Positions 1,986 through 53,825 of a DNA stretch of 64,000 nucleotides are shown in pieces. The first letter of the stretch is position 1. Each line of letters begins with the position of its first letter. The DNA comes from Stegostoma tigrinum (taxonomy: Eukaryota), in the NCBI RefSeq assembly GCF_030684315.1, contig NC_081387.1, positions 6,676,497-6,740,496 of the forward strand. The letters run 5' to 3'. The notes under the pieces were generated by a model. The model saw only the letters and a program-made list of their open reading frames with translations, ran no database searches and was not told the origin of the DNA. Made by a program: the position numbers and the translations under genes.

Positions 1986-2024
1986 ATCCCCCAATGCACA
2001 TGTCCCTGCACACTTTGCACGTAC

Positions 2025-26550: not shown

Positions 26551-29093
26551 ATTGTGTGCTATTAGGACACAACATGGACTTTTTGACACAAAAGAGACCC
26601 AACGTGTCAATCCTTTCATGTTATGTATGCTTGTGCAATATTATTGTTGAAGATATTCCCTGTTCCCTTTCCATATCCTTTGTACTTATCCTTATATAAT
26701 GACTACAACTGTAAACAATACTAGACTCATAAATTTATTGAGTTAGATGTATCTTTGTCACAATCCACACATTTGTATTATTGTGTTTGAATTGCTATAT
26801 GTTTATGAACCATATTGTCTAAATTTGAATTTCTGTGAAGTTTTTTGGACAGGAAGGTGTTAAAGAGCCATAATAGTTGAAACATGGATATGTTTGCAGA
26901 GAGTGGGGGTTGCAGTTGTGATGATTCGAGGATGAAAATAAGTAACCAGTAAACTGCAGTAAGTAAGTTATTGAGGATAGTTCAAGCCAAGGTATAAGAG
27001 CCCTAAAGATGGCTCAAAGATGCAAAAAGGCAGCTTGGAGGAATGGAAAAAGGTATTAAGAGTATTGAGGATTAAAATAACTAGCAAACAAAACAGCCAT
27101 AATGGTAGCAATTGAGCTGAGAGTTGTCATGGCTGAGAAGAGGCAGAAGTATGGGCTCTCTCACTGGAGAGTGAGAAGGAGAATGGATATAATGTGCAGC
27201 TTAATGCAGAAGTGAAAGAAATTAGCTTGTGCCTTCTTTCTCCCTGTGTCCCAGTGAAGTCAGAAGTAGTTACACAGAAGTGACGAAAGCGGCCTGTGAC
27301 AGGTTTATGTGTAGAAATTGTTGCCTCTATAGCAGTCAATTAATCTGATTGCACAACTTTCAGAGCTGGGCCTCCAGAGGTGACAAAAATTACAGAATGG
27401 TGATAAATTACACAAGAATACCATGACGAGCTCACCTGTACAAGAAATAAGTAAATTTTACAGAGTGTTTCATTCATTGTGAGTTTATAAAAATGGCAAA
27501 TTCGAGACAGACACAATTTAATTTGTAACTTTAGATGTCTAACCATAAAATTTGAGAGGTACATATGGCAAAATCATTTTGCAAAATCATCCCAATGTTT
27601 CACTCAATTTCCATGCTTCAGTGATATTCCTGCTTTCGCGCCTTTGCTTTGAGTCAGTTTTAGGCTACTCCCACTGCGCTATTCTCTCCCCACAGTCCTC
27701 TAATAATCCCAAATACATCCCATTTGATTCAAAAGAACTTACTGCCATACTGTCTTGCCACATCCCTGTCTGTCCCAATCTAATCCCAGTCTAATTTGTC
27801 TGCCTTGTTTCATCCTTTTAGCCCCGTATCCAAACCAATTTAATCATTGCTCCACTCTCACCATTGCATGCAGCATCTTCCTTCAATCTACTCACTCACT
27901 CACTCAGGCAACCTCAAAACATTTCTTGTCTGACAACTCCTGATCATAGACCCCCTTGACTGTTCATTGTTACTGAACATACAAGCCACGTGGCTACCTG
28001 CCTGCCCTAAAAAGTGAGACAAAGCAATGCAGAGAAGAAGTGCTGTGTAATTCAAGTAAGCACAACGTGAGGGTGTGTTAAGAAAATTAGCTCAGAGACC
28101 TGAGATGTCTCCTGCTCCTGGCAGCAACACTGCAATGTCACGATGTCAGTCATTCCAGAGTGCTGGACTGTTTCGTAAATGAGTCCCATATGTGCTATGA
28201 TGAGGTGATGAAGCTGTTGCTTTGCAAATGCTATTGATGGTGGGTGCAGGTGGTCTTGGGGCATGGAGTGTGCCCCGGGTTGTTGCTGGCCAAGACAGAG
28301 GCTTGGAGAAGATGCCAGAGAGGTGCAGCCACCAAGTGCCTATTCCGAATTTCACATTGAGAATTATCACCACCTGGTTTCTCCACATGAACTGGAAAGA
28401 AGCAATTTTAAACAAGGCAAGGTTAAATAATAATGACATGTTAATTTATGAGAATAGGCCTCTCACCGTTCACCAGCAACAGTTTCATTGAGACATTAAA
28501 GCCTTCCGTGGAAAATGGGATTTCGCATTTCTGAACATTGTGAATCTTGTTTTTTTCCACTTTTACTATTCTTTCTTAATTGACTCACATATGCTCACCT
28601 CATTCAGGGGCAGGGAAGATTCTGTTACCATTCAACGTAACCCTCCTTTTTTAAAATTAATCCTGTTGTTTTCCCTATGCCTGCAATTGCTTACAAGATA
28701 TTTCATGCAGCAACTTCCAGGTGTAATAAAAGATCATTTATCAGAAACGTTCGTCTGAATCTTAGGTTTCTCACTAACTGAGCATCAATTTAATTGAATT
28801 TCACAGAGGAATTCTCTCCACAAGGCCGATTGAGTTTCCTCATTCAATCATCAAAACCAAATTCATTAGCTATCAAGCCCGCCCCTTTGGTGCATGTCTC
28901 ATCCAACACTAGACCGCTTTTGCCACGCTGCTCCTAATTTGCAGCTTGTATCACTAAAGCAGATGATCTCGTGTCTTTTCACATGCTTGTTTGTGGTAGT
29001 TTGCTGTGCATAAATGGTTTCCCAATTTCTTTCATTGAAAGAATGTTTAGCAGACTAGAGTGTATACTTCTACTGCAAAGGGCAAACTCCACG

Positions 29094-29264: not shown

Positions 29265-29316
29265 ATGCTGCTTCTTACTTTGCTGCACGTTTATTGTATG
29301 TTCATAGTGTCCTCAG
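29265..29316 (+). CDS. Non-classical MHC class I gene, leader exon
   Basis: caacATG; MLLLTLLHVYCMFIVSS + G|gtaagc. Hydrophobic signal peptide. Phase 1 gives Asp (G+AT) at the start of alpha1. Confidence 0.8.
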
Positions 29317-30811
29317 GTAAGCAATTCAAACAGCTGACATATGTCGATAGAATTGAAAGGTACCCGGAGATTTCAGTGTCACAGATTCAGGCTTTGAGTG
29401 TTTGATTGTCTTGGGTGTGTCAGTAATCTAGGGTAAGGATTCTCTTTGTACCAGGAGAGAGAATTGCACCTTGAAGTCATGGTAAAGATTTGTTTTCCAA
29501 GCTCGTGATCCATACAGTTATTTATGGAGATACATCTATTGTCAAAATGCACACGCAAATAATGATCATTGAGTAATGAAGTCTTACAGCTGTAACTTAG
29601 AACTAGAATGAAAAGTACGTAGGGTGAGGGGAGGGGAAAGTGATTGGGAATGCTAATAGAATTTAAAGAGGAGAATGACATTGGGAAGTAAATGGAGAGA
29701 AAGTATTAAATGGTAGGGCCCGGGAAAGAAATTTTGCACCACAATTAAGTGGTTATTTAAGTATTTTTTTCATGTAAAGGGCAAGATCAGCATCTGAATC
29801 TGAACTGAGAAAGAGAAGTGAAACCTACCCACAATGTGGTGTTGAAGTGGGCATTGCAGGAAGGTGTGGGGGGTGGAATTAGAGGTGTGGGACATTTAGG
29901 CCGAAGGGAGGGGGAAAGGGGTGCATTGCATTTCAGTAGCAAGTAAAGTGCAGCAAATTCTTTTTATGCGTGAATTTTATTGTTTTGGCTTTAACTACAC
30001 TGAGAACTGTGGATGTTCAGTCATTTAGTATGTTGAAGGCAAAACTCAACAGATTTCTAGTTATACATGTCATCAAAGGATAGTCCTGGGTAATGGTGTC
30101 TAAGTAGGTGATCAGCCATAATCTGAATGGTGGAGTAGCATTGGCGAGCTGGTTGGTCTACTCCTGCACCCAAGCCTCTCCCTCTGTTTTCCACTCCACA
30201 TTTTGTTTTCTACCAATTTGCTGTTTGTGGTGGTGAGGCTAGAAATCTGCCACAGATGTTAGTGATTGTGTAACAATGCATACATATAATGCATAAATGG
30301 AACTTCATCTGATTTACAGGAGGTGATGAATGGAGGCCCACAATGCTCTGTGCTGGAGCTTTGACCTTTCACTTTTGACTTAGATGAAGGGAATGAAATT
30401 GTGGTGGCTAAACTTGCAAGTGACACAAAGCTAGGAAAGTATGATGTGAAGAAAGTATAAGGAGTGGACTCTTCCCAGCCCCTGAACAATGTGGCCCATG
30501 GTGGGGAGGCAAGGAAAATTGCATGAGATGGCTAGCAAGGAGCTTCTCAATGGCAAGAACAACTAGTCCCACTTTCAATCCAAGTGTTGAAGATTGAATG
30601 GTGAGAGGCCTACCCACTACTATCGTATTATTAGTTTATTTCACTTCATTATTATGCAGTTTCACACTCTCCCTTTTGATGGATAGAAACTCAATAATGA
30701 CAATGATTTATAACTGATTTGATTTATTGTAGTCACATGTACTGAAGCACAGTGCAAAGTTTTGTTTTGTTAGCAGCTCAGGCAGATCATAGCAAACAAG
30801 GACATACAGAT

Positions 30812-31011
30812 AGCAAGGTGTAGAGCTGGATGAACGCAGCAGGCCAAGCAGCATCAGAGGAGCAGGAAGGCTGACGTACCGGGCCTAGACACTTCTTCAG
30901 AAGCCAAAACATCAGCCTTCCTGCTCCTCTGATGCTGATTGGCCTGCTGTGTTCACCCAGCTCTACACGTTGCTATCTCAGATTCTCCAGCATCTGCAGT
31001 TCCTACTTTCT
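30812..31011. mobile_element. Palindromic Penelope-end mini-insertion with 15-bp TSD
   Basis: Inverted arms at ~30809-30875 and ~30908-30976. TSD caaggaca(t/c)acagat at 30797-30811 and 31012-31026. Confidence 0.8.
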
Positions 31012-33078
31012 CAAGGACACACAGATCATGGGTTTTTAGTAAGAGTGAAACATACAGATTCCAACTTCACAGGAGGTGCACAATTCCCAACACAAAGGAC
31101 AGAAGAGATATCTAGCAGCTCCAGCTTGCTGCCAGCTCCTATAAATGTTTGCCTTGGACTCACTTAATAGGCATCAAATGCACAGGCCCCCATCTGCTGA
31201 GTTTGATATCAAACTAGTATGATCCTCACTGGACCCTGATGGTTCATTTCTGCACTTTCTGCACTTTAATGTTGCATTTAGAATGCACCAACACCTTTCT
31301 TTGGAAGGCTACTGCAAGGACACATTTTGTGTAGGGATAGCGCCCATCACATGGACTGGATCTGGCCACATCTGAGGGCCTGCTCACTTGTTCTGTTAGC
31401 AGTCATTCACTTTGTGTCTGCTTTGATGTTGTTGCCTTGCATTTCTGCACTTCACCCTTCAGCTGCACTTTTGAATGGCCCAATTCTACTCCTATGTCTT
31501 ATGGCCTTATGGGGTGCACATGTTACTGCATGGCACTATGCTATGTCAATTTCACAGCTATAGCATGGATCAGCAGACTGCACAGCAAACACACTATGAG
31601 TGCTTTAGCCAAATAGTTATGTCTGCAAGTTTAAGGGGAGTGGTCCTTAGATACTCTTATGTGGTTCAGGAGAAGCTGTCTATTCACAGTTCAAGTACTT
31701 GGGCATGGTCAGTCATCCACTTGGAGTAGTCAGGGTCAGGGGCTCTGAATTGCTACAGTTTGGAAAGTGGCCCATTATCAGTCCAACAGATTCATGTCTG
31801 TGGATTCACTGTAAAACATTTGGGGAACATCATGGAGATCATTCAGAGCCTGGTCAGTAATCATTGGGGGCTGTTCCTTCATATCAGTAAGGGGAATAGG
31901 CCATAGTCAGTCTTTGTGTTCAGTATAATGAAAATGATGTGGCAGGGGGAAGCTATCAGGGGACCCGACTTTGGAGGGAAATGGGAAAAGTTAATTCTGA
32001 GGATTGGAACCAAGGGGACAAGGAGGATGAAGGGAAGAAATGGGACACATGAGGAGGGGAGAACTATCTTGCAGAGGAGGTCATGGAATATTGTGGGAGA
32101 CGTATTATCCAACAGTTGCTACCAATATGGCCTTGCTGAGAGGACTGTGGAGTGTGATGGGGGCTGGCCTAAACTGTAGGGACTTGGTTTAAGCAGTAAG
32201 GATGACAGTAGCAGACATATTTCCAGGCAGTAGATGGAAACAAAGGGAGAGTGAGGGTTCAAGGGGCTGTCTAGGAAGTGCCAGGAAGAAAGCAATAGAG
32301 TTGGGGGAGTGGGCACGGGGTAGGCCTCTCTTTATTCCAATATTGACCCTGCAACTCACTGTGCCTAGCTGTTCCGCATTCACTTAATTCCTAATGTGAA
32401 TGGCAAATGGAAAATGGCTGCAACCATAGCCAGAGTGGGTGGAATCAGTGTTTTGGTTCTGTTCTAACACACAATGGTCCATTTCTGAGCAATGGGTGGC
32501 CTTTCAAGGGTAATTGTGTTAATCATGCACTTGCAGAGTACAGGTATAACTGTATTCACAGCATCAAACATGTGAAATGCAAGCAAAGTCCAATTGCGGG
32601 GTTCAAATCCCAGTCACAAGCAATCCTGGTCATGTCATTTCTGACTGAATATAGCCATCTTTATGAAACAGAAGTAAGCAAGGGGAAATTAAAGGTGGTA
32701 CCTACAGATGACAAGCTTGAAGCTAATGTATGATTTAATAGGCTACACAACGGCAGCAGCTAGCACCCTCTCACCCTGAATTGTAAGTACACTCCAGTAT
32801 GATCATACATGCAATTTGCCCTTTCCCAGATGATGTAGGGTTGGGAGCACAATGTATCAGTACTCATATAGAATTTATAATCTCCTACTATCTCTTTGCT
32901 TCATTCATCTGAATAAGGTTCCATGTCAAAGTTTAATATACAGGTATTCTATGATTTTCCTTGTTGTAGTCCTCCATGCCTCCCTCTATGAAGCTAAAGC
33001 ATCATTTAATAGTGACTCACGTCACTTAAGGACCTGTTCTGTTTCAGATATTGTCCCGTTTTATTAAAACTGTAGCCG

Positions 33079-34170
33079 ATGGATCAGGCTAGAGCAGGTG
33101 TTATTGTCGCTATTGCTGAGGTGTCACTGTGGAGCAGAGAAATGGAGGAGGAACAGATACACCAGCAAGCCCAGGACAAGCAAGAACCTCCAGGGGCTGC
33201 TGAACAGCTTCCAGATGAGCAGTCCCAATACGCAGGAGATAGAGGAGGGCCAGAATTATTTGTCCTTGTTTCTATTTGCTGCAAAATGTAGAAGGTGTAG
33301 TGTTGCCACAAGGATGAAGCAGTCCCTTGAAGCTCTCATAGAACATTTCCAACTAATGGAGCAGGACCTGGAGGAGGGCTGGGCGGTCATCCATCTGGCC
33401 TCCTTTGAAGCTCCATTGAATGTTGATATAGCTGGTTCCTTCCAAGGAGTACTGGTCCCGATTTGGAGCCTTTCATTCCTCAATCCACAAATGGATGAAG
33501 GCCATTCCTGTCCAATTTGTACCAGATAAAACTCTTTCATCTTATTTCTCCATGACTAAATCAATTCCGCAGCCTACACAATGGGCCTTCCTAAAGTGCA
33601 ACACACAATAGGCTGTACATATGTCATGACTGTGTTAATCAATTGAAAAGGCTTCCGATTCATTGAAATACAAATCATCTGTAGTTCAAATAAGCTGGAA
33701 GCAGCTGTGGTGCCTTGAATACTTTCATGTTCCTGCTGCATTTCAATAGCCAGAAGCCTGGCAAGAATGTTTACCCAGAGACAAGGGCAACCTGCTGTGA
33801 CCATGACTCATGTCTCCATTAAACAAACTTCTGACTGATGTGAGGACAAGATATGATACAGCACACTCTTCAAAAAGGGCAATGATGGAGCACACGATAG
33901 GCCTGCTGAAGATGAGGTTCCATTTATAGGATCAGTCTGGGGAAGCCTTGAGGTAGCTCTGTGCAGCATACGTTGCTTAATCCTGCCATGGTGTGGACTG
34001 CAGAGCTGGAGCATGCTAAAAGGAGATGTGTTGGAGGCTGGAGATCTGGAAGGATGGCAATTGTCTTCTAAGACGGAAGATGTGGACTTTGAACAGGAGG
34101 AAAATCACTAACTGCAGTGGTCGAGGAGTATTGGGTGCTACCAGCCAAACAGGATTTAAATGACACCCAG
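33079..34170 (+). mobile_element. Fossil PIF/Harbinger (HARBI1-like) transposase in MHC intron 1
   Basis: GLPKVQHTIGCTYV (cf. GFPxVxGAIDCTHV) at 33581, IN*KGF..IQIIC (cf. NRKGFHSINVQ.VC), and EHTIGLLKMRF..DQSG at ~33890-33930. Many stops and frameshifts. Confidence 0.75.
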
Positions 34171-34494
34171 TTCCAATCGATGTGAGCTGGGTGCAGTGAT
34201 CAATCAATGACTGTAAATTTGTTGAAGCTCAAAAGGCAAGCAATTCCTATCTCTTCCAGGAGTCAAATGCAGCTTCTGCTTGTTTGATTTCTGTTTGTTT
34301 TTGCTATTACTGAAAAAAGTGAAATGTCTGAAGCATTGAAATCTTTTCCTTAATTGTCCCACATTCAACAATATAAAATATTGGGCAACACTGGGGATTG
34401 GGAGATGATATTAGAAAGGGCATTAAGATGGGATGTGGTAAAGACAGAGAAGCTGTAGCTGGTTAAACAGTGGTAGATATACAAATGTACACTT

Positions 34495-34790
34495 CGAGTC
34501 ATAGAGATGTACAGCCCAGAAACAGAACCTTTGGTCCAACTCGTCCATGTCAACCTGATATCCCAAATTAATCTAGTTCCATTTATCTGCAGTTGGTCTA
34601 TATCCCTCTAAACCCTTCCTACTATTATACCAACCTGATGCTTTTTAAATATTCTAATTGTACCCGCCTCGACCACCTCCTCTGGCAGCTCCTTCCATAC
34701 ATGGAGGTTCCTCTGTGTGTAAAAGTTGCTCTTAAGTCCCTTTTAAATCTTTCCTCTTCCACTTGAAACCCTGCATATTAGTTGTGTACT
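34495..34790 (-). mobile_element. CR1 LINE 3' fragment
   Basis: Homologous to 24670-24960 and 2025-2310. Confidence 0.75.
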
Positions 34791-36119
34791 CCATTTGGCC
34801 TGAGCAGTTTATTAGTTGCTATTCTGCAACGTACAAGGTAAAGGGAACTCTAGACTGCCAGCAATTGACCCGTTGGGCTACAAAGATGTCAAATGCCATG
34901 GACCATGAGATGTCCTGGCAGTGGCAAATACATCTGCTTATGGTGAGTGAGAGAATAGAATGAGCTGGTTGCCGCAAGGATGTGGTGTATAGCTAAAGAG
35001 GTGAGTTTGGGACAAAAGCTGTATAGCATGCAAAACAATAATTTCACTGTATACATTTGACAATAGAATATCAAATCAAATAAAAACCTGCTAGGCTTCG
35101 TGGGCATATAGCTAAAATGCCACTGAGCCAATTTCGGGTAATTTCCAGCTCAAGGAGTTTGTAGAAGGATGTAAATTGATTGATTGAGTGGGTAAGAATC
35201 TGGCACAAGAAGTATGTCATTAGAAAATGCGAAATTGTTCACTTTGACGGGAAAAAACAAAATAGGAGGGAATCACTAAGATACAGAGTGACTACAGAAT
35301 TCTGAAGCATGCAGTGACTTTGATGCTCTTATGTATGACTGACAGAAAGTTAACATGCAGGTACAACACGTAATTTAGAAGATTAATGGTCATGATTACA
35401 TGACAAACTAAATATATATGTTGTGCTTCAGGTGTACAGAGCTTTGGTGAGACCACATCTCAAATACTGTGTGTTGTCCATTTAAGGAAGCATGCAAATA
35501 CATTGGAGAGAGTTCAGAGGAGGTTTACTACATTGATACCTTGAATGACCGGCTTGTCTAATGAGGCTAGATTGGACTTGGTGGGCTTGTTTTGACTGGA
35601 TATTTACATATATTGGAGAAAATGTTGTTCTTCCTTGTTCTCTACACCCCATTCCTTTACAAAACTCATTAACTCCTTTCAAGCCACATTTTAGGGTTGA
35701 TTTTCCTCACTTCTTTGAAGTACTCACTGGCCTCCTTGCTTGCCAGCTCTGCATCCAGTCCAGTCTCATGTCCCTACCTATTATTTCTACTGCTCCAACT
35801 CTGGGTTATACTCCGCATCCCTACTAACTCTGTTCTGGTGGATAAACCTCCATTATGTCATGTTCCAGCCCTCCTTCAATACATCTGTCCTGAGTCTTCC
35901 TTCCTCCAGAATACAAAATCATGGGCCATCTTCCATCTGACTGCCCTTTTGTGGTTTCCTTTCTGCACAGCATCTCTGTGTACACAAGAATGGTGTATTA
36001 ATGTGACCTGTTGCATACAATCAAAACATGTCTCCCTTGAGCCTTTTCCATGTTGCAGTTATATTGTGGCAGGACTTTAACTTAACTTCATGTACTCACC
36101 TTGGTTCCATAACACTCAA

Positions 36120-36750
36120 CAGGCACAGCAGGTGGTAAAGAAGGAAAATGTTATGTTGGCCTTCATGGCGAGAAGATACAGGAGCAGTGATGCATTTCTG
36201 CAATTGTAAAGGGTCGGCGAGACCACACCTGGAGAGTATTGTGAGCAGTTTTGATCACTTTATGTGAGGAAGGACGTTCTGGTTATGGAGGGTATGCAAC
36301 AAAGTTTTTCCAGCCTGATTCCTGGTATGGCAGGAGTGACGTTGAAGTGAGACTGGATCGGATAAGACCATATTCCTTGCAGTTTAGATGGTTGAGGGAG
36401 ATCTCTTAGAAAGTTATAAAATTCTAATAGGGTAAGGGTAAATACAGGAATGTTATCCTTGATGATTGGAGAATACAAAACTAGGGATCACAGTCTAAAA
36501 ATATGGAGTAGGCCATTTAGGACTGAGATGGGGAGAAATGTCTTCACCTAAAAAGTGATGAGCCCGTGGAATTTTCCGCTACAGAAAGTGCTTGAGACCA
36601 AGATAATGGATGTTTCTAAGAAGGAGTTAGATGTATTTCTTAGGGCGAAAAGGAGAAAGCAAGAACAGAGTACTGGAGTTGATGATCAGCCATAATCATA
36701 TTGAATAGCAACACAGACTCAACGGGCCGAATGACCTACTCCTGGTCCTT
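36120..36750 (+). mobile_element. CR1 LINE 3' fragment
   Basis: gagaccacacctggag, ttgagggagatct, tttaggactgagatg...gaaatgtcttcacc, and tail gggccgaatgacctactcctg. Confidence 0.75.
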
Positions 36751-38146
36751 TTTATACAAACTTTTTGTGTAACAGAATGCCCTCAATCTGTTCTCAAACA
36801 AGTAACCGACCCTCCAGCTTCAATTGTTTTTTGCAGAGAATGTGTTGCAGCATTCTAGTCTCCTTAGCGTGAGAAAATGCTTTCTAAAATCATTAGTGCC
36901 TTATTCAGGCTTCACCCTCTTGAGAAATTTCTTTAAATTTGTTAACAGGATGTCAACTTCACTGGAAAATAAACAGCATTTATTACCCACTGCTATAATT
37001 TTCTCTCTATCATTTGTACCAAATTCTTAATCACCTAATTTACAGATCCTGTCACACTTCACTCCTGAAGGGAGCATTACTCTAATCTGTACAACCTTGT
37101 CTCATCTCATATTTTAATGCTCGGGAATCAAATCACTTCAACACAGGAATGAGGTTTCTCACAAGACACCTGTGATCAGACAGCAAACATATATCACTGG
37201 CTCTGGGGCCTTTCTTGAGAGGATGTGACAGGTTCCATTTAAATGTGAATTATTTCTGAACCTCCTCCTGTTACACTAGCAGGGTGACTCTGAAATTTGG
37301 TATAGATTCTAATCTTGTCCTCTATTTCCTTCTTGAGCTCACAGAAACACAATGAACTTTAACACCGTCTAATCTGTTGGTTAGGCCCGAGAATTTTTTT
37401 TGTTTCTGAGCAATTATTGTCGTTTATTACAGTTTCTGAATGAGTCAAGGCCAGAGTGAACTTGTGTTTCTGCTTATGGAGAGAATTAGCTGCTGAACTG
37501 ACAATACTTCAAGCTGTTTCAGAGATAATTATCACAATATGTATTTTTAATAAATGGGCATATATTGGACAATGTCACACTGCAATTTGAGTTTGGAATT
37601 TTGCGTGCTACTAATTAACTTGCATTTCTGTAGCCACGTTGTGAGCTATGTAGGCAGACTAAATGCTTTCTATTTACTTTAGGAACTTACAACCTATTAA
37701 GATCGGCAATTGTACCTCAAAGCTCATGAAATACATAAAGGTCAGGTTTTTTTTAAGGGGATCAGAGACTTAACTTAGAGGGAGACTTATGGTCTCAGTT
37801 CTATTTGGAATCGGGTGGTTATTTGATGGAGATGGTTGCAAACAGCAGTGCTCCTTCAAAAGGGGGAGTATAATGAAGCCAGGTTATCATACAGTAACGA
37901 GTTAGTGATAATCCCAAACAAATATGCCGGGATAAAACACTCAAGAGGCTTCTTGAAGCTGAATATGTTTAAGGTCAGGTGTATGTTAGCTATGAGCTCC
38001 AGAAAGAAGCTATCAATGTCTCTAGTTGAGGAATTAAGTCAGTTACCTTAAATCTATGTAAGTATTAGTGAAACAGATTCTGGTTTGTGTACTGTACAAG
38101 AGTTGCTGTTCAGCACTTCAAATGGTGTTGTTTGTTTTGTGAAACT

Positions 38147-38501
38147 TAGAATCCCTACAATGTGGAAACAGGCTATTCAGCCCAAGATGTCCACACTGAT
38201 TTGCTGAAGAGCGTCCCACTCAGAATCACCCCACATCCTATCCCTGTAACCCTGCATTCCCCATGGCCAATCCACCTAACTTACACATCCCTGAACACTA
38301 TATGGGCAATTTAGCATGGCCAATCCACCTAACCTGCACATCCTTGCACTGTGGGAGGAAACCAGAGCACCTGGAGGAAACTCACGCAGATGCAGGAAGA
38401 ACGTACAAACTCCACACAAATGGTCGCCTGAGAATGGAATCAAACCCGAGTCTTTGGCATTGTGAGACAGCAGTGCTAACCACTGAGCTACCGCGAAAGC
38501 C
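38147..38501 (-). mobile_element. HE1-type SINE
   Basis: Reverse complement of the 18172-18487 family. Confidence 0.85.
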
Positions 38502-38719
38502 ACCCTGAAAGAAGCATTAATGGGGTTATAGTTTTACAGTGTGTTAAAAACTCTGAATTTGTTTTATAAATAAATAGATTTATTGGTTTATTCTATTTTT
38601 CCACTGTTTAATTTTGCATAATAAACTTCTGTTGTTTTGCTATATCAAAGTATGCAACATTTCATATTTCTGTATTTGTGAGATACCACCTCAATTACCT
38701 AGAATGAAAAAAAATCTAT

Positions 38720-38762
38720 CAAGTCAGATCCCAGTCCATGATCTCAACTGGGATCTGACTTG
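38720..38762. repeat. Perfect 16-bp hairpin (11-nt loop), probably within an LTR-like relic (~37560-38790)
   Basis: CAAGTCAGATCCCAGT-ccatgatctca-ACTGGGATCTGACTTG. Confidence 0.9.
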
Positions 38763-39422
38763 TCCAATAATAACATCAGCTGGGATCATCCGTACCAACC
38801 TGTGGTGTAGAATCATGCAAGTGGAATTTTTTAACATGACTGTATGGTTTCCATTGCAAGAGAAGACAGGAAATCCTGGTTTCTGTATCCCTCACTGTCA
38901 ATATAAGTAATCCAAATCCCACCCTATGTTTGTTTTAATGATGGCTAGTTTCTGCTCTCACTGAGAGTTCAGACATTTCCATCAGAGCCCTTGAACTATC
39001 TCAGTTTCACTGAAAAGAATCTCCATCTGCCCTCCTTGCTCAGGCCCACCATGCTCAGGAATGACCTGGCCAAAAAATCCATCACTTGCTTTCTGTCACC
39101 TTGATATCCTCCTTAACAAGGTACAAAATGATCAAATATTCAAACTATGCTCTTTGGAAATCTTTATAAGAATGTTGTGGAGTAGATTTAACGTGGACTT
39201 AAACTGATTCTTAAATAGGAAGGAACACACACGAGGCAGGGTTTAGACAGGAAAATGGAATCAAGTCATGATGTTATTGATTAGGAGGCAGTTGGAGGAG
39301 CAACCTGGCTTATTCCTGCTTTTATTTCTTATATTCAAGTTGAACATCAATGTGTGCCATACTCTCAGTTATTTTACAATCAATGATGTTTATAAGACTG
39401 TTTCCTCTTTGTAATCCTTCAG

Positions 39423-39683
39423 ATTTTCACGTCCTCACATTTTACTACTTACTGAACCTTGGCCAGGCTGAACTGCCTGAGTACAGTTTGTTGGCGATGC
39501 TAGATGACTACCACATAATTTATTTCGACAGCACACTGGAGTTGTGCGTACCCAGACAACACTGGTTGGCACAATCCTTCCCAAAGGATCACTGGGTCAT
39601 GATGACTATCACAATGGCGGGATTACACGGTCTTGTGAAAGGAAACATTGAGATATTTTATCAACAACACCATGGAGGTTCTG
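39423..39683 (+). CDS. Non-classical MHC class I gene, alpha1 exon
   Basis: ccttcag|AT ... TCT G|gtaggt, 261 nt, phase 1-1. DFHVLTFYY...LPEYSLLAMLDD...YFDS...VPRQHWL...HW has the class I alpha1 landmarks (H3, D29, FDS, PR..W, W60). Confidence 0.92.
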
Positions 39684-40124
39684 GTAGGTGTTTTCACAAC
39701 AATGGCAAAGTAACTAATTTGTATTGGGACAGTGTCATAGTAACATCCTGAACTGTTTCACGCATGGTACAAGACATGGAATTAGCTGGATGAAGTCACT
39801 TTCTGGGAATAATGCAGAAGACATTAGTGCACAGCAAAATTGGTGAGGTGATTCACTTGCTTTTGCATGTGTACAAGAAGTGAAAACACCAGCATCTCAG
39901 TAGCCTGATTGAACAGGGAGAAACTTGTTTTAAATAATCTATATGATGGCATTTTTGACAAGGCAGCATTCTGTATTGCCTTTCAGACAGTGAAGTTCTC
40001 TTCAGTAATCCACCTCGAAAAGTGCAACACTCATTCAGTTCTTTACTGTAATTCTGAAATTGCAGCACTCCTGAGCATTGTTCATTTCACAATATAGTAT
40101 TCCATCACTACTGATCTACAGACA

Positions 40125-40330
40125 GTGCAGCACTCCCTCAGTTCTAATCTTCTGTCAGAGCAGCACAGCTTCAGTTCTAATCTTCTGTCAGAGCAGCACA
40201 GCTTCAGTTCTAATCCTCTGTCAGTGCAGCACTTACTCAGCACATTTAGCCTGATAGTGCAGTTCTCTCTCAGTGCTGATGCTCCAAGGGGCAGTACCCA
40301 TCAGGACTGACCTGCTGATGATGCAGTGCT
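40125..40330 (+). repeat. 33-bp tandem repeat, ~6 decaying copies
   Basis: cagttctaat(c)...gtcagagcagcac at 40139, 40172 and 40205, then degenerate copies. Confidence 0.85.
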
Positions 40331-41625
40331 CAAAATACCACCAAGCTGACATACCACTTTGGTGTGCTGACAACATCAGCTTAATGTCGTTGCAGATTTA
40401 CGTAATGATCACCAAATAATTTTGGCATGATTTCAAATGTGTAGGAAGTGAAACCTTGAGGAACTTCTTCTGTCACTGTCATAAAGATTTGCAGAAGTTG
40501 CCTTTGAGATATGCCAGATCCTTTTTTAACATTTCAATTCATAAACATTGAGTATCTCAGTAGCTTATTCTGGAGATCAATCATGCTTTGTGCTCAGATG
40601 TATGTTGGATCTGTTGGATAAAATAGCCTGTTTTGTTGATGTAAATACTAAGTCACTTACAGCTACGATAAAAGTTGAGGATCACAGAATATTTTAAAAC
40701 TTGTTCTTGGGATGGATATTGGCATTTATTGCACATCTCTGCCAATCATTAATGCCTGTGAGAAGGCAATAAAACATGTGCATGCAATCTCAAATTAAAA
40801 CTGTTTTGAAATATAAGAACTAAATAAAGTCTTCCAGCTCTTCATATCTTATCTGCCACTCATGTAGATCCATGCTTAACCTGTTTTTAACACTCATTGA
40901 CTTGACTTCACTTTCTACTGTTTGATACCTTCACCGAACACAATTGTTCCTTTCTCAGAATTTGAGTATCTGATTGATCTTCAATGGGAGAAGCCATTTG
41001 GCTCATCTGGGTTTAAGTAAACATTTATGTCCCAGGTTAGTTTGCTCTGACTCAATTTCATCTCACCTGATCAGCATATCCACAGATTCCTTCCTCTCTG
41101 TTGTGTTTCTCTAATACTATATACCCCTACTAGTCATCTCAACCACTTTCAATCATCATGAACTCCAGCTTCTAAATCACAATTGGATTTAATAAATACT
41201 ATCTTAATTGGAGAGAAAACAAGATCTCCACCTTAGGATGTACTGCTTTTGTGAAAAAATGCATCCCGGTTTCAGGCCTCAATGACTTAGTTTGAATTTA
41301 TATCTGACGCCTCTTATCCTTGAGTCTGCCACCAGAGGAATGCAGCTTCTCTGGAATTGCTTGCATGAAGCTTTCCACCTTGGTCAGTCTTCACCTCTGT
41401 CTCCTCCTTTAAGGCCCCACTGAAAACTGACTTCTTTATAACAGGGGCCCGGTATCCTCTGTGGAGTTTGGGAGTGTTGGGGAGGGAATTTCGATAAATC
41501 ATACTCCTGAAGTACCTTGGGACATTTTGTATTGAAATGGCCAAAGAAATATAAGCTGTTTTGTATCTAGCTGACTGAACCTTTTTCACATTGTGAATTG
41601 TTTTGAATGTTAATGCTCTCTCCAG

Positions 41626-41901
41626 GCCTTTTCTTTGTCCAAGGAATGTGTGGCTGTGAATTGCACACTGATAATTCCACTGATGGGTTTATAAAGCTTG
41701 GATATGATGGGCAGGACGCATTTGCTTTCAATAAGGATAGAATGAGTTGGATTGCGTTCAATCCAGAGTTCCAAGCGTTAGCGGACCGGTTGAATTTCCA
41801 CACCTTCCTGAACAAATACTTCAAGACCCTGTTGGAAAAGGACTGCGTGAAACAGCTGCTGACATACCTTAAATGTGGGCAAGCAGCACTACAGAGGACA
41901 G
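41626..41901 (+). CDS. Non-classical MHC class I gene, alpha2 exon
   Basis: ctctccag|GC ... ACA G|gtatgg, 276 nt, phase 1-1. VQGMCGCE...GYDGQD...W...DCVKQLLTYL has C101/C164 and YDG.D. Confidence 0.95.
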
Positions 41902-43388
41902 GTATGGTTCAGGATCAGGCCTTAGATGAAAACTGTGCCAGTGCCATGTGTAATTCATAGATGACCTTTTCTATCAATTTTGTTCATTGCAGATTTTTCA
42001 ACTTTCATCAATGTCCAATTATTGAGCCCCTAACTCCAAGAATTCTTTATATCTGTTCTTTAATAGATGGCAGCAGTGCATGGGCCATGCCTTGATTTTC
42101 CTCGGTTAAGTCACAATCCACGTCAGCATTTTTCCTTCGATTCACAATAAAAACTTGCAGAAGTCATGCCCTTTCACTTGGTATTTAGTTTCAATTATTC
42201 CTTTCCAAAGCAACTCCAATCTGAAAAGAAGGATTTAGTGGACTTCTTCCACATAATCGGTTCCATTGCTAAAATTTTGTTTGTGTAACTGAACTCAAAT
42301 TCCACCATCTGTCATTGGTGGGTTGCAAACCTACCATCTCTAGAACATCAGCCTCTAAGTCTGGACTACTAGTTTAGTGATATTACTGGTGTGCCACCTC
42401 TCCCCTTAAGGAAAACGGCTGTAGTCATTAAAGGTAAACTCATTGCCAGGCTGTCTCTGCAGGAGTTCCTCAGGGGAGATAGATTCCTGATCAACATCCT
42501 CAGGGATGCTAATTCCACACCCCTGGAGCGGGGTGGGGGAAGGGACGTGAAATTAGACCTCCTGACTCCTGTCACAGCAACACAACGACCCTCTTGTCAG
42601 TCCTTTCTATCCCAACTTGTTAAGAGATGTTATTACACTCTACTTGCATAGGTGGACCTTGAATTGAGGATCTCTGACTCAAAGATAGGCACATTATCTG
42701 CACGCAAGAGCCCCTTTGTCCCTCCTTCATTTATTTTATTCTGATATTCCTTCATTCAGAAGTGCTGAACTTATATTTTCCCATCAACATATTGTCCATG
42801 GTATCTTTTTGTCATTTATGAAACACTAGCAGAAAATCACCTGTTTTCCAATTAAGTAATTTACACGGCAAGTTCATTAAGGGCAATGCAAAGTCAATGC
42901 TGAGGGAGAGATTGTGGGAGGGAGTGGTGGGCTAAATCAAAACCGACATGGAGGGGAAAATATAGCATCGCACCATTTTCCGTGCCTACTTCTCTCTAAA
43001 GGCATCAAGATGGACACTGTGTGCTGTCTCTCCAATGACACCCAGGCTTGAACGTAATGGTGGAATAGGAGCAGGCAGTCAGCAGAGTTGACCCTTCCAC
43101 AGCCCACTGCCTACATATGTTTATAGACAGCCTGGCCAAGCCCACAAGTAGACCCACAAAGAGGTCCTCCGTTCTGCCAACTGACCAAAGATTAGGAGTG
43201 TATGTCTCTCCTTTATATCTTCAGCCTATTAATGAAGCAATTAACATAAATCTCCTCCTTACCTTCTTGTTATATTAACAATGATGATAATAGGGCTGTT
43301 GTGGTGTCATGTTTGCATCTCTACATCAGGGGCCTAAGGCTTGGGATCACATCCCATCTGCTCCAAAAGTGTGCTTTAAAATCTCTGA

Positions 43389-43624
43389 TAACAAAGTGTG
43401 AAGATGGATGAACACAGCAGACTAAGCAGCACCTCAGGAGCACAAAAGCTGATGTTTCAGGCCTAGACCCTTCATCAGAGATGATGAAGGGTGTAGGCCC
43501 GAAACGTCAGCTTTTGTGCTCCTGAGATGCTGCTTGGCCTGCTGTGTTCATCCATCTTCACACTTTGTTATCTTGGATTCTCCAGCATCTGCAGTTCCCA
43601 TTATCTCTGATACAATTTTAACCC
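43389..43624. mobile_element. Palindromic Penelope-end mini-insertion with perfect 15-bp TSD and two hammerhead-like cores
   Basis: Arms 43387-43477 and 43482-43572 (4-nt loop). TSD ctttaaaatctctga at 43374-43388 and 43625-43639. Confidence 0.9.
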
Positions 43625-43951
43625 CTTTAAAATCTCTGAATAGATTGACGAGAAGATATCTGTGATGTGGTGATGGTTGCTTTATCCTACTGTAATGAAG
43701 ATAACACTGTTTTTCTCTCCTTTTCAAAACTTAAAAGGAGGTGGACAGCTCAGATCAATTGTATAATAGAACGAGTGGTGTATTAACAGAGTCAATTGAT
43801 TCTTAATTTGTATGTGGTGGGCAGGCTTCTAATTTTAGCACCAGTACAAACATTGTGCTATGGGGATGAAGGAAGGTGGTAGGATGGATACTCGTCCCCT
43901 TTATGTGTCCTCCTAGCCCAGTGACACTCGCCCCCTTATATGTGCCCTCCT

Positions 43952-44287
43952 AGCCCAGTGGTTAGCACTACCGCCCCACAGCACCAAGGACGTAGGTTTG
44001 ATTCTCGCCTTGGGCAACGGCCTGTGTGGAGGCTGTACATTCTCCCTGTGTTCCTCCGAGTGCTCTGATTTGCTCCCACAGTTTAAAGATGTACAGGTTA
44101 GTTGGATTGCCTATGGTAATTTGTCCATAGAATCCAGGGATGTGCAGGCCAGTTGGCGTAGCTACGGTAAATGCAGGTATTCAGGGATAGGGTAGGGGAT
44201 GAGTCTGATAAGATTCTCTTTGGAGCCTCGGTGTGGACTCAGTGGGCTGAATAGTCTGTTTCCACGCAATGCAGATTCTGTTCTGTG
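43952..44287 (+). mobile_element. HE1-type SINE
   Basis: cagtggttagcactaccgccccacagcacc head and the family body. Confidence 0.75.
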
Positions 44288-44844
44288 ACTGGATGACATT
44301 ACACCCAGGAGTGGCATGTATAATGTTGCCCAGCTTGTTGATGACTACATGTCAAGCCTCTTCATAATTCTGAAACCCTCTAGATTATCCTCTCACCTTT
44401 CTTTTTCATTTGTCAGCATCAGTCCAAAGCCTTCATAGAGGCATAGAAACAGAAAATAAGAAATCAGGATTGGGCAATTTGACTCTTTAAGGCTGCTCCA
44501 CCATTCAGTATAATCATGGCTGATCACCAACTTAGCACCCTTCATACGCCCAAAATATTTTGATCCTTTTCTCCCTAAGAAATTTAACTAACTCCTTCTT
44601 GAAAACATTCAATGACTTGACCTCAAATGCTTGCTGTGGCAGAGAATTTCACAAGCTCACCAATTTTTGAGCAAAGACATTTCTCCTCACCTCATTCCTG
44701 GAAGGCCCATCCCGCATCTTTGAACTGTGACCTGTGTGAGCTGAGGATTTTGATAATAAATAGGGAAATTTAAAAAAAAAGAGAATTTTCCACAAATATG
44801 CAAATGAAATCTTGTAGATGCCAGGACTCTTGTGGTGGGTTAGT

Positions 44845-45195
44845 GAGAAATGATGGCCTTCTGTTACTATCACTGGATTATTAATTCAGTGACCTAGATA
44901 ATGTTCTGGGTACCTGGATTCAAATCTTGCAATGGTAGAATTTGAATTCCATTATAAAAAAAAACTGGGATTAAGAATCCAATGATGACCATTGTCAATT
45001 GTTGGAAAAACCCATCTTGTTCACTAATGTCCTTTAGGGAAGGAAACTGACATCCTTACCTGATCTGGCCTATGCATGACTTCAGGCTCACAGCAATACA
45101 GTTGTCTCTTAACTTCCTTGGGGACAATTAGAGATGGACAACAAATTCAGCCTAGCCAGGGATGCCCTCATCATGTGAATGTACAAAGAAAGAAA
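44845..45195 (+). mobile_element. tRNA-derived SINE (same family as 2385-2745)
   Basis: aaaacccatcttgttcactaatgtcctttagggaagga...ctggcctatg shared body. Confidence 0.75.
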
Positions 45196-45311
45196 ATGTC
45201 TGAACTAAAAGGTGAAGGGCCTGGCAATTCTGCTGTGTAAATTTGGAGAGAGCAAACCACGTTGGTGACTTTTTTTTATCAGTGATTTGAGTCTTTGGTT
45301 AACTCTCTCAG

Positions 45312-45584
45312 TCAGCCCCGAGGTGTTCATTGGGAGCAGGACTGATGGTGAGCGAGCCCTGAGTCTCTCCTGCCTTGTGATGGGCTTTTATCCTGGGGAT
45401 ATCGAGGTGACATGGCTGAGGAATGGACTGGTGGTCCTTGACGTTGAATCCACTGACCTGCTCCCCTATCAAGATACAACGTACTGGGTGATGAAGACGT
45501 TCAAACTCAGTCAAGATGATGGGGAGAGGTACTCCTGTCATATTGAGCATACCAGCCTCATACAGGAGCTCGATGTACCCTGGG
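45312..45584 (+). CDS. Non-classical MHC class I gene, alpha3 (C1-set Ig) exon
   Basis: ctctcag|TC ... TGG G|gtaagt, 273 nt. PEV...LSCLVMGFYPGDIEVTWLRNG...YSCHIEHTSL...W. Confidence 0.95.
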
Positions 45585-45769: not shown

Positions 45770-46470
45770 GCAAGGTTTTGCATTTTGGTAAAACAAACAA
45801 GGGGAGGACTTATACAATTAAATGTAGGCATTGGGTTGTGTTCGAGAACAAAGAGGTCTGGAGGTTCAGTACATAATTCTTTGAAATTTGTGTCGCGCAT
45901 TGATAGGGTGATTAAAAAGGTGTTATAAGGAGTTAGGACGTCATGTTGAAGTTGTACAGGGCATTGGTGAGGCCTCTTCTGGAGTACTGTGTCCAGTTTT
46001 GGTTGGCCTGTTATAAGAAGGATATTGTTAAGCTGGAGAGGGTTCAGAAAAGATTTACCAGGATGTTGCTGGGAATGGGATGTATGAGTTATGCAGAGAG
46101 ACTGAATTACCCTGAAATTTTTTCACTGGACTGTAGGAGGTTGAGGGGTTACGTTGTAGAAGTTTATAAAATCATGAGGGGTATAGATAATGTGAAAAGA
46201 CTACGGGCAGATTTTTAAGGTGAGAGAACAATTAAAAAAATGAGGGGCAACTTTTTTACACAAAGAGTGGCTCGTGTGTGGAATGAGCTTCCAGAGGAAG
46301 TGGTGGATGTGGGTACAGTAACAACATTTAAAAGACATTTAGATAAGTACATGAATAAGAAATATTTGGAGGGATATGGGCCAAACACAGACAGGTAGGA
46401 CTAGCTTATTTTGCGATTATGGTCAGCATGGACTGGTTGGACTGAAGGGTTTGTTTCCATGCTGTATGAC
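45770..46470 (+). mobile_element. CR1 LINE 3' fragment
   Basis: MLKLYRALVRPLLEYCVQFW...LERVQKRFTRML. Confidence 0.88.
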
Positions 46471-48390: not shown

Positions 48391-50089
48391 AATTACCTCC
48401 CCCGACTGATCCCTCTGATGTTTTCATGACGTCCTTCTAGGCCCAGAGTTTCAATGAATAAACCACTCTTGGTTTGACTGTGGCACTATCAATATTATTC
48501 CTTTGCTATCTTGAAAGAAAAATTGGCTTCAAGAATAAATGGTCCCTTGTACTGTTTAACTAACAGTTTTGTCTCCTTGTGAATTACCTACAGCTAAACG
48601 TTTGAAACTGTGTTGCTCTGTAAGTTAAATTATTATTTCTTAATCCCTTTCAATAACCTTATGTCAAGCCCATTAGGCCAATGCCCCATTTTTTCCCATA
48701 GTCCTGTACCAAGACGAAAGTTAATCCTACATTCTTGAAAGGTGATACGTAAATTTAAATGCTCTTTCTGATGGTGCATGTAAAGCACTATTTTGCAGTT
48801 TATTGAAGTACACCATGAATTTAATTTTAAGTTACTATTTATTGATATTATTTTAATGTGAACAATATGTGTTAATAGAGCGCACATTACATGGAGCCAT
48901 TAAGTTGGGAACTATGACCGGAGCATCTGCCATCTCCCTCACTCTTCTCGGAATCATCACGGGAGTTGGTTTCTGGAGGAAGAGACAGATTGGTCAGTCT
49001 AACAGAGACCAGCAGATGTAGTCGGAGAGCAACAGAGACTGGAAGAGACTAACAAAGGTTAACAGAGAACAGAAGAGACAGACGAAGATCAACAGAGACC
49101 AGCAGAGTACATCAGAAATGTTCAGAGAATAACAGTGACCAGCAGGTGGCCAGCATTCTGTTCCCACATTTCCCTGAACCTCTGAACCCATGACTGGCAT
49201 GTTTGGTGTCAGAGAATGGTTGGAGTTCTGCTCCCCCCATAGAGCAGTCCAAACCTCTCATAGTGATCTTCACATTTAGATTGGTCTCTCCAGCTTGCCC
49301 CACCCTCCCAACAATCACCATTGCCCAGGTCCAGAGCTAGGTCCAGCTCCTGTTGCTAACTATAAAAATTAACAGAAGCAGCAGAATTGTGCCTAAAATA
49401 GAACAGAATAAGTAAGGTCCATAGAGCCTGCTGTCTCATTAAAAATGAACATGGCTGAAGTTTGATATCAGAGTATCTCATGTACCCTGTTTCTATATCG
49501 CTTGAATCATCTCATGCCCCATTAATATCCAGTTGAGTCCACACATCAATCGAACAACTTTGTGAGAAACAGTTCTAAAAAATAACAACCCACTGTGGAG
49601 GAATTTATCCTCATCTCATCATGAAAAGTTTGATCCATTATTCTAAGATTGTGACAGCCAGCTTTGGACAACCAGTCAGCTCCACAGCCTCTACTTTGTC
49701 CAACTTTTGACATTTCACTGCGGTCGCCTCTATTTTTCCAAACTTCAGACAGTATCAGCCCGTTTTACTCACATTTGCCTTGTAGGAGAGCCATTTCATC
49801 CAATAAACATTTGAACTGTCATTGGGTTCTCGTCCAGGTATGTCCTTCCTTAGGTAAAGAAACCCACACTGCACACAATAGTCCAGTTCTGATCTCATCA
49901 CAACTCTGCATAATCATATTTGACTTCTTCACTCTTTCAAGCCTTCTTGCCCTCTTAATTGTTTTTTGCGCTCTGCATGTCAGCATTCTGTGAGTTTTTT
50001 AAGAAAATTGATTTGTTTTGATTTACTATTGTCACATGTACTTAGATTATACCATAGAACGTGTATTAGGGTAATACAACAGTGCAAAG

Positions 50090-51954: not shown

Positions 51955-52270
51955 GTCTCTCAAGCAGTATAAGAAAAAAAAGTGATAATTATCTGGTCAT
52001 CTCTCAAGCAGTGTCACAAAAAAAGGTGACGATTATCTGGTCATCTCTCAAGTAGCATCACAAAACGAAGCCATGATTATCTGATCATCTTTCGTGCACA
52101 TTTCAGAAAATAAATGATGATTATTCGATCATTTCTCAAGCAGTATCACAAAAAAGTGATTATTATCTGGTCATCTCTCAAGTAGTACCACAAAAAGAAT
52201 TGATTATCTGGTCATCTCTTCAGCAGTATCACACTCCCACACACAACATTGATTGCCTGGTCATTTTTAC
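51955..52270 (+). repeat. ~43-bp tandem repeat, ~7 copies
   Basis: tctctcaagcagtatcacaaaaaa..gtgatgattatctggtca unit repeated. Confidence 0.9.
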
Positions 52271-52871: not shown

Positions 52872-52895
52872 GGAAACGAAAGTGAAATGAAAGTG
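52872..52895 (+). promoter_or_regulatory. Tandem ISRE/IRF-binding array upstream of the TRIM gene
   Basis: GGAAACGAAAGTGAAATGAAAGTG contains four GAAA cores including GAAAGTGAAA, ending 28 bp before the ATG. Confidence 0.8.
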
Positions 52896-52922
52896 CATCA
52901 ACAAGACAAGGGGACAGGCAAT

Positions 52923-53339
52923 ATGGCCACTGGCAAACATGTTTTAGTCTCGACTGAGGATTTAACCTGCTCCATCTGCCTGTCTCTGTTTGTGGAGCCG
53001 GTGCAATTGGGCTGCGGGCACATCTTTTGTAAATCCTGCATCCAGAAATGCTGGGAAAAACAGGGGGAAGTGGTGTCGTGCCCGGAATGTCGCGCAGTTT
53101 CCCAGCAGAATAGTTATGAGAAGGCCAGGGTGTTGGCTAATCTCTGTGAGAACGCTCGGAAGCTGGAGTTGAACCCGGGTGGGGAGGATAAGAGGGCCTC
53201 GCACTGTACGGAACACGACGAGAAGCTGAAACTGTTCTGCGAGGACGACCAGGCTCTGATCTGTGTCATTTGTCGCGAATCCCCCGCTCATTCAGGCCAC
53301 AGCTTCCTGCCTGTGGCAGATGCCGTGAAAAAGATGAAG
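52923..53339 (+). CDS. TRIM family E3 ligase (TRIM39/TRIM27/TRIM35-like), first coding exon: RING + B-box2
   Basis: aatATGG start. C3HC4 RING (CSIC..CGHIFCKSC..CPEC), B-box2 (CTEH..FCEDD..ICVICRES..HSGH). Phase-0 donor AAG|gtaaac. Downstream exons were not found in the window. Confidence 0.95.
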
Positions 53340-53825
53340 GTAAACGAGCACTAGAAATGGTTTATGGCATCAGAGTTAGCTTTTTACGCTGCTGTGGATG
53401 TTTACGTAATGCAGTAGTTACTAGTTATATTTTCTCTTTACCCGGAATTCTGTTTTCTCAGCAGCTGCAAGGTTTTAATGGTGCCAGATCCCTTTAAACC
53501 CCTTCCTATCCGGGTACGTGTCCAAATGTCTATCAATGTTGTCAGTGTACTCACCCCCACCACTTGCAGTGGTAGGATGAGTGCAGCTGAAGTGGAGTGG
53601 TGTACAACCAGGAAGAAGTTGTGCTGGCAGTCCTCAGAATTCAGCACCAGACCCTGAACAGGTGTAATATAGACAAAAGAAACTTGCTAATCCAGACCGT
53701 CCTGTCTCACTTGAGGAATCAGTTTTCCATGTTGGGCACCGCCTGCAGGAAGCACTAAGGTTGGCAAGGGTGCAGAACATATTCGGGTATTAGCACGGTG
53801 GGCAAAATTTTGTACTGGGTCGACC

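Follow-up and report, generated by a model that had tools for sequence, protein, structure and literature searches.

Two non-classical class I lineages of the major histocompatibility complex (MHC) of sharks, UFA and UGA, are represented in the Protein Data Bank (PDB) by entries titled "shark nonclassical MHC class I, UFA" (8GM8) and "shark nonclassical MHC class I, UGA" (9CH4). Both bind lipids according to a review that cites crystal structures and mass spectrometry as personal communication (PMC12562908). Here, we analysed a stretch of 64,000 nucleotides from the zebra shark Stegostoma tigrinum (contig NC_081387.1, positions 6,676,497 to 6,740,496 of the forward strand; hereafter the window) and found in it a class I gene of a lineage that is close to UGA and distinct from both. 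With a probability that we put at roughly 0.55, this gene is an intact five-exon non-classical class I gene, sister of UGA, whose 334-residue type I membrane product displays a hydrophobic non-peptide ligand.

The features of the locus are collected in Table 1. All exons of the gene lie on the + strand, are open, have consensus GT/AG splice sites and keep phase 1 throughout, and together they form a complete coding sequence of 1005 nt that is translated into 334 amino acids. The initial annotation had described four exons, open and in phase, and we could confirm their coordinates, splice sites and phase 1; it had ended the gene at 45584, and this part did not hold, since a fifth coding exon follows downstream. 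Public collections were searched exon by exon, the spliced protein being joined for alignments, trees and local blastp against fetched proteins. Searched singly in this way against Pfam, alpha2 matched MHC_I at 4e-16 and alpha3 matched C1-set at 7.5e-17, with only 0.032 for alpha1; the orthologous proteins described below reach MHC_I at 81-97 bits, and the alpha3 exon also matches class I and beta2m-type C1 domains in the PDB. The disulfide cysteines are at mature residues 98 and 161 (C101-C164) and at mature residues 200 and 255 (C203-C259); three of the four are invariant in 12/12 orthologues and mature 200 in the 11/11 that cover the position. The product thus belongs to the MHC class I superfamily, with platform and C1-set domains on separate phase-1 exons, disulfides and a membrane anchor. 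Because the RefSeq protein XP_059495580.1 (P0066) matches every exon at 100%, the locus being already annotated automatically, and because orthologues are found in 11 other species, the gene is beyond chance. Its structure is well supported.

Table 1. Features of the class I locus and its surroundings (positions in the window).
Feature	Position	Strand	Description
Exon 1, leader	29265-29316	+	Start codon and signal peptide; 17 codons + 1 nt; phase 1 out; donor CAG/GTAAGC
Exon 2, alpha1	39423-39683	+	261 nt, 87 aa; very divergent; F7, H59, Q84, no N86 sequon
Exon 3, alpha2	41626-41901	+	276 nt, 92 aa; C101-C164, extra invariant Cys99, NST sequon
Exon 4, alpha3 Ig C1-set	45312-45584	+	273 nt, 91 aa
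Exon 5	48879-49021	+	Connecting peptide, transmembrane segment, 14-residue basic polar tail; stop 49019-49021
30-nt tandem repeat	49026-49107	+	Immediately 3' of the stop; Tandem Repeats Finder
RefSeq first coding exon	34886-34942	+	100% by tblastn to P0066 residues 1-19; no signal peptide; in no orthologue; pLDDT 45-58; doubtful
RefSeq second 5' exon	36579-36680 (match range; exon end near 36670)	+	tblastn to P0066 residues 18-51; doubtful
RefSeq addition to exon 3	41902-41949	+	48 nt via downstream donor T/GTAATT; probably intron
TRIM gene, first exon (RING + B-box)	52887-53351	+	Pfam zf-B_box 2e-11 and RING families; 3.9 kb downstream of the class I stop

The leader, separated from the other exons by a 10-kb first intron, is the weakest part of the gene model. 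It is the best hydrophobic ATG-to-GT candidate in 25-39.4 kb, being signal-peptide-like and followed by a consensus donor, and its match to the Heptranchias (P0064) and Pristiophorus (P0062) orthologues, at 12/17 residues, begins at residue 1 of their annotated N-termini. A simple pattern scan upstream of the ATG gave two CCAAT boxes and no canonical interferon-stimulated response element, kappaB site, TATA box or cAMP response element. At the other end of the gene, exon 5 starts at an AG acceptor in phase 1, matches the C-terminus of P0066 at 100% and is homologous, residue by residue, to the transmembrane and tail regions of the orthologues; its segment is also covered by a helix (348-371) predicted in the AlphaFold2 model that was made for P0066 with an alignment of 52 sequences. 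Because exon 5 encodes a transmembrane segment, the product is a type I membrane protein and not a secreted one. A donor at 48992/48993, right after the transmembrane segment, was considered and rejected, as the orthologues and RefSeq continue directly into the tail. What follows the zebra-shark stop as a 30-nt repeat is translated in the orthologues as a Q/R/E/T-rich cytoplasmic tail, and by tblastn the Pristiophorus and Heptranchias tails align onto 49002-49146, across that stop.

The RefSeq model differs from ours at the 5' end and after exon 3; it looks wrong in both places. First, its 5' exons provide no signal peptide, and the second of them overlaps a repeated element, because the summed contig depth in bin 36500-36699 (1,470-9,383) is far above that of unique bins (~5-25). 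Second, it uses a downstream donor at 41949, so that 16 residues encoded by 41902-41949 are inserted. This insert is absent in 11/11 orthologues and is the part of the ectodomain with the lowest confidence in the AlphaFold2 model, where residues 228-235 and 238-241 are below 50 in predicted local distance difference test (pLDDT).

By searching 1.84 billion protein representatives with the alpha1 exon, we found one close cluster (P0001, skate, 71%), then a gap. Using P0001 as query, we then recovered orthologues from 12 elasmobranchs, as a rule a single one in each (Leucoraja, Pristis, Mobula, Hypanus, Pristiophorus, Heptranchias, Scyliorhinus, Mustelus, Cetorhinus, Stegostoma, Hemiscyllium and Chiloscyllium), all of them named MR1-like by RefSeq. 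They are 58-80% identical to the zebra-shark protein, and everything else is at most 40% identical (35-40% for the next relatives). In two trees these orthologues form a clade with 100% support in the Shimodaira-Hasegawa-like approximate likelihood-ratio test (SH-aLRT), which broadly tracks the species tree and in which the terminal branch of the zebra shark measures 0.16 (0.03-0.19 in the other orthologues). Its sister is a clade, also at 100% SH-aLRT, that contains the 9CH4 sequence (P0002 vs 9CH4, 1e-138) and is thus UGA; the union of the two is supported at 98 and 86. UFA, the clade of 8GM8 (P0032 vs 8GM8, 2e-61) and of stingray proteins that RefSeq names "CD1d-like", is a third, long-branched clade, joining the other two at 86. 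Matches in the PDB were as follows: UGA 9CH4 (8e-21), UFA 8GM8 (2e-9) and nurse-shark UAA (2e-7) for alpha1; UGA (2e-17) and MR1 (5e-15), with HFE and ZAG just after, for alpha2.

Since 8GM8, 9CH4 and the zebra-shark gene sit in separate clades, the gene is neither UFA nor UGA. Moreover, both the UGA clade and that of the zebra-shark gene contain sharks and rays, so the duplication that separated them predates the shark-ray split. Stegostoma, Pristiophorus, Leucoraja and Pristis each possess a gene of both types. The initial annotation had assigned no lineage; in the phylogeny that it called for, the gene falls within neither UFA nor UGA and belongs to a separate clade sister to UGA. Its placement as an old sister lineage of UGA, distinct from UFA, is well supported. 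UDA, which reportedly keeps eight of nine peptide anchors according to a 2020 study, was excluded, like UEA and UBA, by features and not by the tree, as the anchors are lost and there is one gene in most genomes. UEA and UBA are multicopy (PMC10751288). No Squalus protein was found among the matches to the lineage, which is weak evidence against identity with UCA (Squalus acanthias NC1). We did not find a name for the lineage in the literature searched, which did not cover the primary UFA/UGA paper.

To compare groove residues, human leukocyte antigen (HLA) numbers were mapped from landmarks and checked on a MAFFT alignment, and HMMER alignments to nurse-shark UAA (6LUP) and MR1 agree with them. 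In the control columns, bony-fish classical sequences show Y7, Y59, R84, T143, K146, W147, Y159, Y171, W167 and N86 as expected; positions 143-147 depend on the placement of a one-residue indel. The residues that the initial annotation had aligned by eye were all reproduced, that is, F7, H59, Q84, A123, L143, R146, L147, L159, Y171 and Q167 at the anchor positions and L24, M63, M67, L70, L73, V74, I80, F81, I114, L116, L152, F156 and G97 facing the groove, together with the absence of the N86 sequon and the presence of NST in alpha2 (mature 104-106). Its call of a non-classical class I gene is borne out by the loss of anchors and by the composition of the groove. Most of these features belong to the whole lineage, with F7, H59, Q84, A123, L143, R146, L159 and Y171 in 12/12 orthologues. 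By comparison, W147L is limited to three orectolobiform sequences, the 9 other orthologues retaining W147, and W167Q is unique to the zebra shark, W167 being retained in all other orthologues. As a result, Y171 is the only peptide-terminus anchor kept in the zebra shark, and W147 and Y171 are the only ones in the lineage consensus.

These residues bear on whether the molecule could be a presenter of specialised hydrophobic peptides or lipopeptides that are bound non-canonically, comparable to leader-peptide presenters and binders of N-myristoylated cargo. Y171 is kept, W147 and W167 are kept in most orthologues, R146 is conservative for K146, and an invariant groove is what would be expected for one conserved set of ligands. 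There is also a solved precedent in chicken YF1*7.1 with an N-myristoylated amino acid, which surfaced only via the unreliable P0032 model. However, Y7, Y59, Y/R84, T143 and Y159 are replaced in 12/12 orthologues by residues that are unable to form the same hydrogen bonds, and we consider such a presenter distinctly unlikely.

Over 43 groove positions, the zebra-shark lineage is 67% hydrophobic and 5% charged, with a mean Kyte-Doolittle score of +1.26. The corresponding values are 52%, 11% and +0.58 for UGA, 55%, 9% and +0.82 for UFA, and 47%, 11% and +0.02 for bony-fish classical sequences, while the four remaining lineages of the eight compared have grooves that are 47-56% hydrophobic. The groove of the zebra-shark lineage is thus the most apolar of the eight, and the remainder of alpha1-alpha2 is similar in hydrophobicity across all of them. 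No other part of the protein is as conserved. First, 25/43 groove positions are invariant in the lineage. Second, the columns of the groove have a mean conservation of 0.90, compared with 0.81 for the remainder of alpha1-alpha2 and 0.77 for alpha3; identity to the sawfish orthologue is 63% in alpha1, 73% in alpha2 and 56% in alpha3. Third, the small residues A26, G69, G76, G97 and A123 vary little or not at all (one orthologue has V26). The ligand-binding domains therefore evolve more slowly than alpha3, which is the opposite of a classical gene.

UGA is the best match of the gene in both sequence and fold (38-40% identity). In Stegostoma the UGA gene (P0167, one of those that RefSeq names "F10 alpha chain-like") is on the same chromosome-sized contig. 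The two lineages have 22/43 groove consensus residues in common, including L5, Y9, Y22, G69, F70, G76, G97, L116, A123, M152, Y155, F156, L159, L160, D163 and Y171. Yet UGA retains Y7, Y59, K146 and the N86 sequon, whereas the zebra-shark lineage has F7, H59, R146 and no N86 sequon, and UGA is found in up to three copies in some species. UFA resembles the zebra-shark gene in its hydrophobic groove, in the loss of peptide anchors and in its reported MHC-Ib linkage, but the two are only 27% identical, and UFA has deletions around 84-86 and 146 and lacks W133 and Y171. As for classical UAA (6LUP), exon plan, two disulfides and fold (Foldseek E 1.3e-26; template modelling score 0.74 normalised to target) are alike, whereas identity is 28%, only the Y171 anchor is retained in the zebra shark (most orthologues also having W147, with K146 conservatively replaced by R), the N86 glycan is absent, and alpha1-alpha2 is more conserved than alpha3.

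Three further features set the lineage apart from UGA. First, all 12 orthologues have a cysteine at HLA position 99, in the groove floor and adjoining C101 of the disulfide, where UGA has Phe. Second, the lineage has its own NST at mature 104-106 in 11/12 orthologues and NTT in the twelfth, a site that is absent from UGA. Third, the cytoplasmic tails differ. A YxxPhi motif directs CD1b, c and d to endosomes, and none was found in any of the 12 tails of the zebra-shark lineage; the tail has no Tyr in 10/12 orthologues, and NYSKP in two rays is not YxxPhi. Among the UGA-lineage tails listed, in contrast, 11/16 are short and carry YxxPhi (YNVI, YNVV, YNTV, YNAV, YQTI, YENI or YESI). This UGA motif follows a run of basic residues (proteins P0164-P0174) and is similar to the one by which CD1b, c and d are sorted to endosomes. 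The three UFA-lineage proteins examined (P0031, P0032 and P0150) end in a hydrophobic stretch without cytoplasmic tail, an ending that could reflect a glycosylphosphatidylinositol anchor or a minimal transmembrane anchor.

The invariant cysteine is of particular relevance to another possible mode of action, that is, presentation of small apolar metabolites as by MR1, where this groove-floor thiol might capture the ligand covalently. As said above, MR1 is the next-best alpha2 match in the PDB after UGA, the RefSeq name is MR1-like, and the gene resembles MR1 in its highly conserved groove and may, as far as at most two animals show, also resemble it in being monomorphic. In addition, a second cysteine (39545-39547, mature residue 42) aligns by HMMER with the position of Lys43 in MR1 (K43A in 4LCW). 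This cysteine is common only to Stegostoma and the two bamboo and epaulette sharks (Hemiscyllium and Chiloscyllium). The other orthologues have T, I or A there, and therefore the lineage has no conserved Schiff-base residue. Furthermore, the polar and basic groove residues of MR1 are unmatched, the groove being apolar instead of aromatic and basic, and the similarity to MR1 is modest and lies mainly outside the groove. An MR1-type presenter is in our view highly unlikely. Judged from sequence, the resemblance to MR1 is one of general class I sequence and not of orthology, and the RefSeq name "MR1-like" is misleading for the whole lineage.

The initial annotation had also called the groove CD1-like. 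With CD1, the zebra-shark lineage indeed has in common an apolar groove, the loss of anchors for peptide termini and a class I fold with a C1 alpha3 domain, and with CD1a in particular a tail without a tyrosine sorting motif; low polymorphism may be a further parallel, judging from at most two animals. However, CD1 chains were absent among the alpha1 matches to E = 10 and among the best 60 alpha2 matches listed, and Pfam MHC_I_3 stayed below its cut-off (25-30 bits vs 35). In the AlphaFold2 model, pLDDT is above 90 over most of alpha1-alpha2, and the structure to which the model aligns best is UGA (Z 25.6 over 267 residues, 40% identity), ahead of HFE (23.2), ZAG (22.8), chicken CD1-1 (22.2), classical class I (~21.8), FcRn (21.0), human CD1d (20.6), UFA (19.4) and EPCR (19.0). 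The first five of these matches span Z 21.7-25.6, and the two CD1 chains do not stand out from HFE or classical class I. Since no special kinship with CD1 was found by sequence, profile or fold, "CD1-like" holds as an analogy of groove chemistry and not as membership of the family. Ranking by whole-chain fold was rejected as a discriminator, as MR1, classical class I, HFE, ZAG and CD1 were not separated. The predicted fold confirms the family and gives no pointer to function.

The same comparison brings up the main rival to a ligand-presenting role, namely that the protein is a cargo-free or non-presenting relative with a receptor-type role, like HFE, FcRn, ZAG or the NKG2D ligands, its apolar surface being a narrowed groove or a protein-binding face. 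HFE, ZAG and FcRn fit the model about as well as CD1 does, HFE and ZAG come next after UGA and MR1 in the alpha2 sequence matches, the many conserved small groove residues could allow the helices to close up, and there is no endosomal sorting motif. On the other hand, conservation is higher at groove-facing positions than elsewhere in alpha1-alpha2, about half of these positions are in common with UGA, a reported lipid carrier, and two helices and a platform are predicted with high confidence. Taking both sides together, we hold this rival to be unlikely.

Because the anchors for peptide termini have been lost, the groove is both apolar and strongly conserved, and UGA and UFA are reported to hold lipids, a hydrophobic non-peptide cargo is the likeliest, and we infer that binding of such a ligand is the best reading of these sequences. 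In the mechanism that we propose, the heavy chain would pair with beta2-microglobulin, the groove would hold a hydrophobic non-peptide ligand (a lipid, a lipid tail or another apolar small molecule) conserved across elasmobranchs, and the molecule would present this ligand on the cell surface for innate-like T cells or natural killer (NK)-type receptors. Loading would probably take place along the secretory pathway, at the cell surface or in early recycling endosomes, and not in late endosomes, because the tail, unlike that of UGA, has no YxxPhi.

Several observations weigh against this proposal. The margin in hydrophobicity over the other shark lineages is moderate (67% vs 47-56%), and hydrophobicity was scored on sequence positions by HLA numbering, not on pocket coordinates. 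The binding of lipids by UFA and UGA is a personal communication, and the gene is only 38-40% identical to UGA. Relatives with an apolar or narrowed groove may hold no cargo (HFE and FcRn) or be non-immune (ZAG), with fold scores that match those of CD1. No RNA run was found among the public runs located, which hold genomic DNA only. Finally, the zebra-shark tail has a premature stop relative to the orthologues, which read on, and this copy lacks both W147 and W167, which could mean relaxed constraint in the species.

The last of these points would also fit a zebra-shark copy that drifts to loss of function while the lineage is functional elsewhere. W167Q occurs in the zebra shark alone, W147L is common only to close relatives, the tail is cut by a stop, a signal peptide is missing from the RefSeq model, and the public runs located include no RNA. 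Against such a drift, however, every one of the five exons is open and has consensus splice sites, nothing is missing from the leader, from either disulfide pair or from the transmembrane segment, the terminal branch is ordinary in length, and the truncated tail, though short, retains basic stop-transfer residues. We therefore give this possibility very little credit.

Polymorphism was assessed in four public runs (X1-X4). They were considered as RNA and rejected as such, because their contigs cover introns evenly, as genomic DNA does. Across these four genomic runs, which represent at most two samples or animals, there was no variant in the alpha1 or alpha2 exons and there were three intronic differences in 6 kb. 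At 40767 (intron 2), all four runs have T where the window has C, and single-run differences were seen at 39012 and 42279. The absence of exon variants, with at most two animals sampled, fits a non-polymorphic gene.

With regard to the neighbourhood, a TRIM gene begins downstream of the class I gene (Table 1), and a 44-nt tandem repeat of 6.4 copies lies just upstream of its first exon (51956-52233). In a published table of the Pristis MHC chromosome, only one gene bears the RefSeq name of the zebra-shark gene; it is marked as MHC-Ib and stands between B2M/BRD2 and COL11A2/RXRB; TRIM39-like genes are listed upstream of this MR1-like gene and three "F10-like" MHC-Ib genes just after it. Within intron 1, 38147-38790 is a very high-copy interspersed repeat, with a summed contig depth of ~1,000,000 (vs ~20 in unique sequence) and many internal joints, typical of a family like the short interspersed nuclear elements. 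Open reading frames at 45943-46218 (+), 54086-54409 (-), 60707-61108 (-) and 16055-17356 (+) have motifs in common, LEYCVQFW among them, and resemble fragments of a single retroelement family; of the frames scanned against Pfam (45943-46218, 55653-56108 and 60707-61108), none gave a match at E 0.01. A class I alpha1-like tblastn match at 28073-28318 (-), with 28-31% identity and E 0.002-0.008 in 64 kb, was set aside as probably due to chance.

From UFA and UGA it has been argued that lipid presentation and the classical MHC are equally old. Beside them, we tentatively propose a third, unnamed and ancient lineage with a hydrophobic groove, the most apolar and conserved of the three, with an invariant thiol and without a sorting motif, the lineages dividing labour between compartments and this one possibly capturing its ligand in a thiol-dependent manner. 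If this is true, a division of labour between compartments of the type of CD1a versus CD1b/d was already present in cartilaginous fish, and sharks may have a third way of displaying lipids or other hydrophobic ligands. A third related lineage, conserved in sharks and in rays and with its own groove chemistry and a different tail, means that this arm of class I had already diversified before the shark-ray split, and it is a natural comparison for linking such features to ligands and cell compartments.

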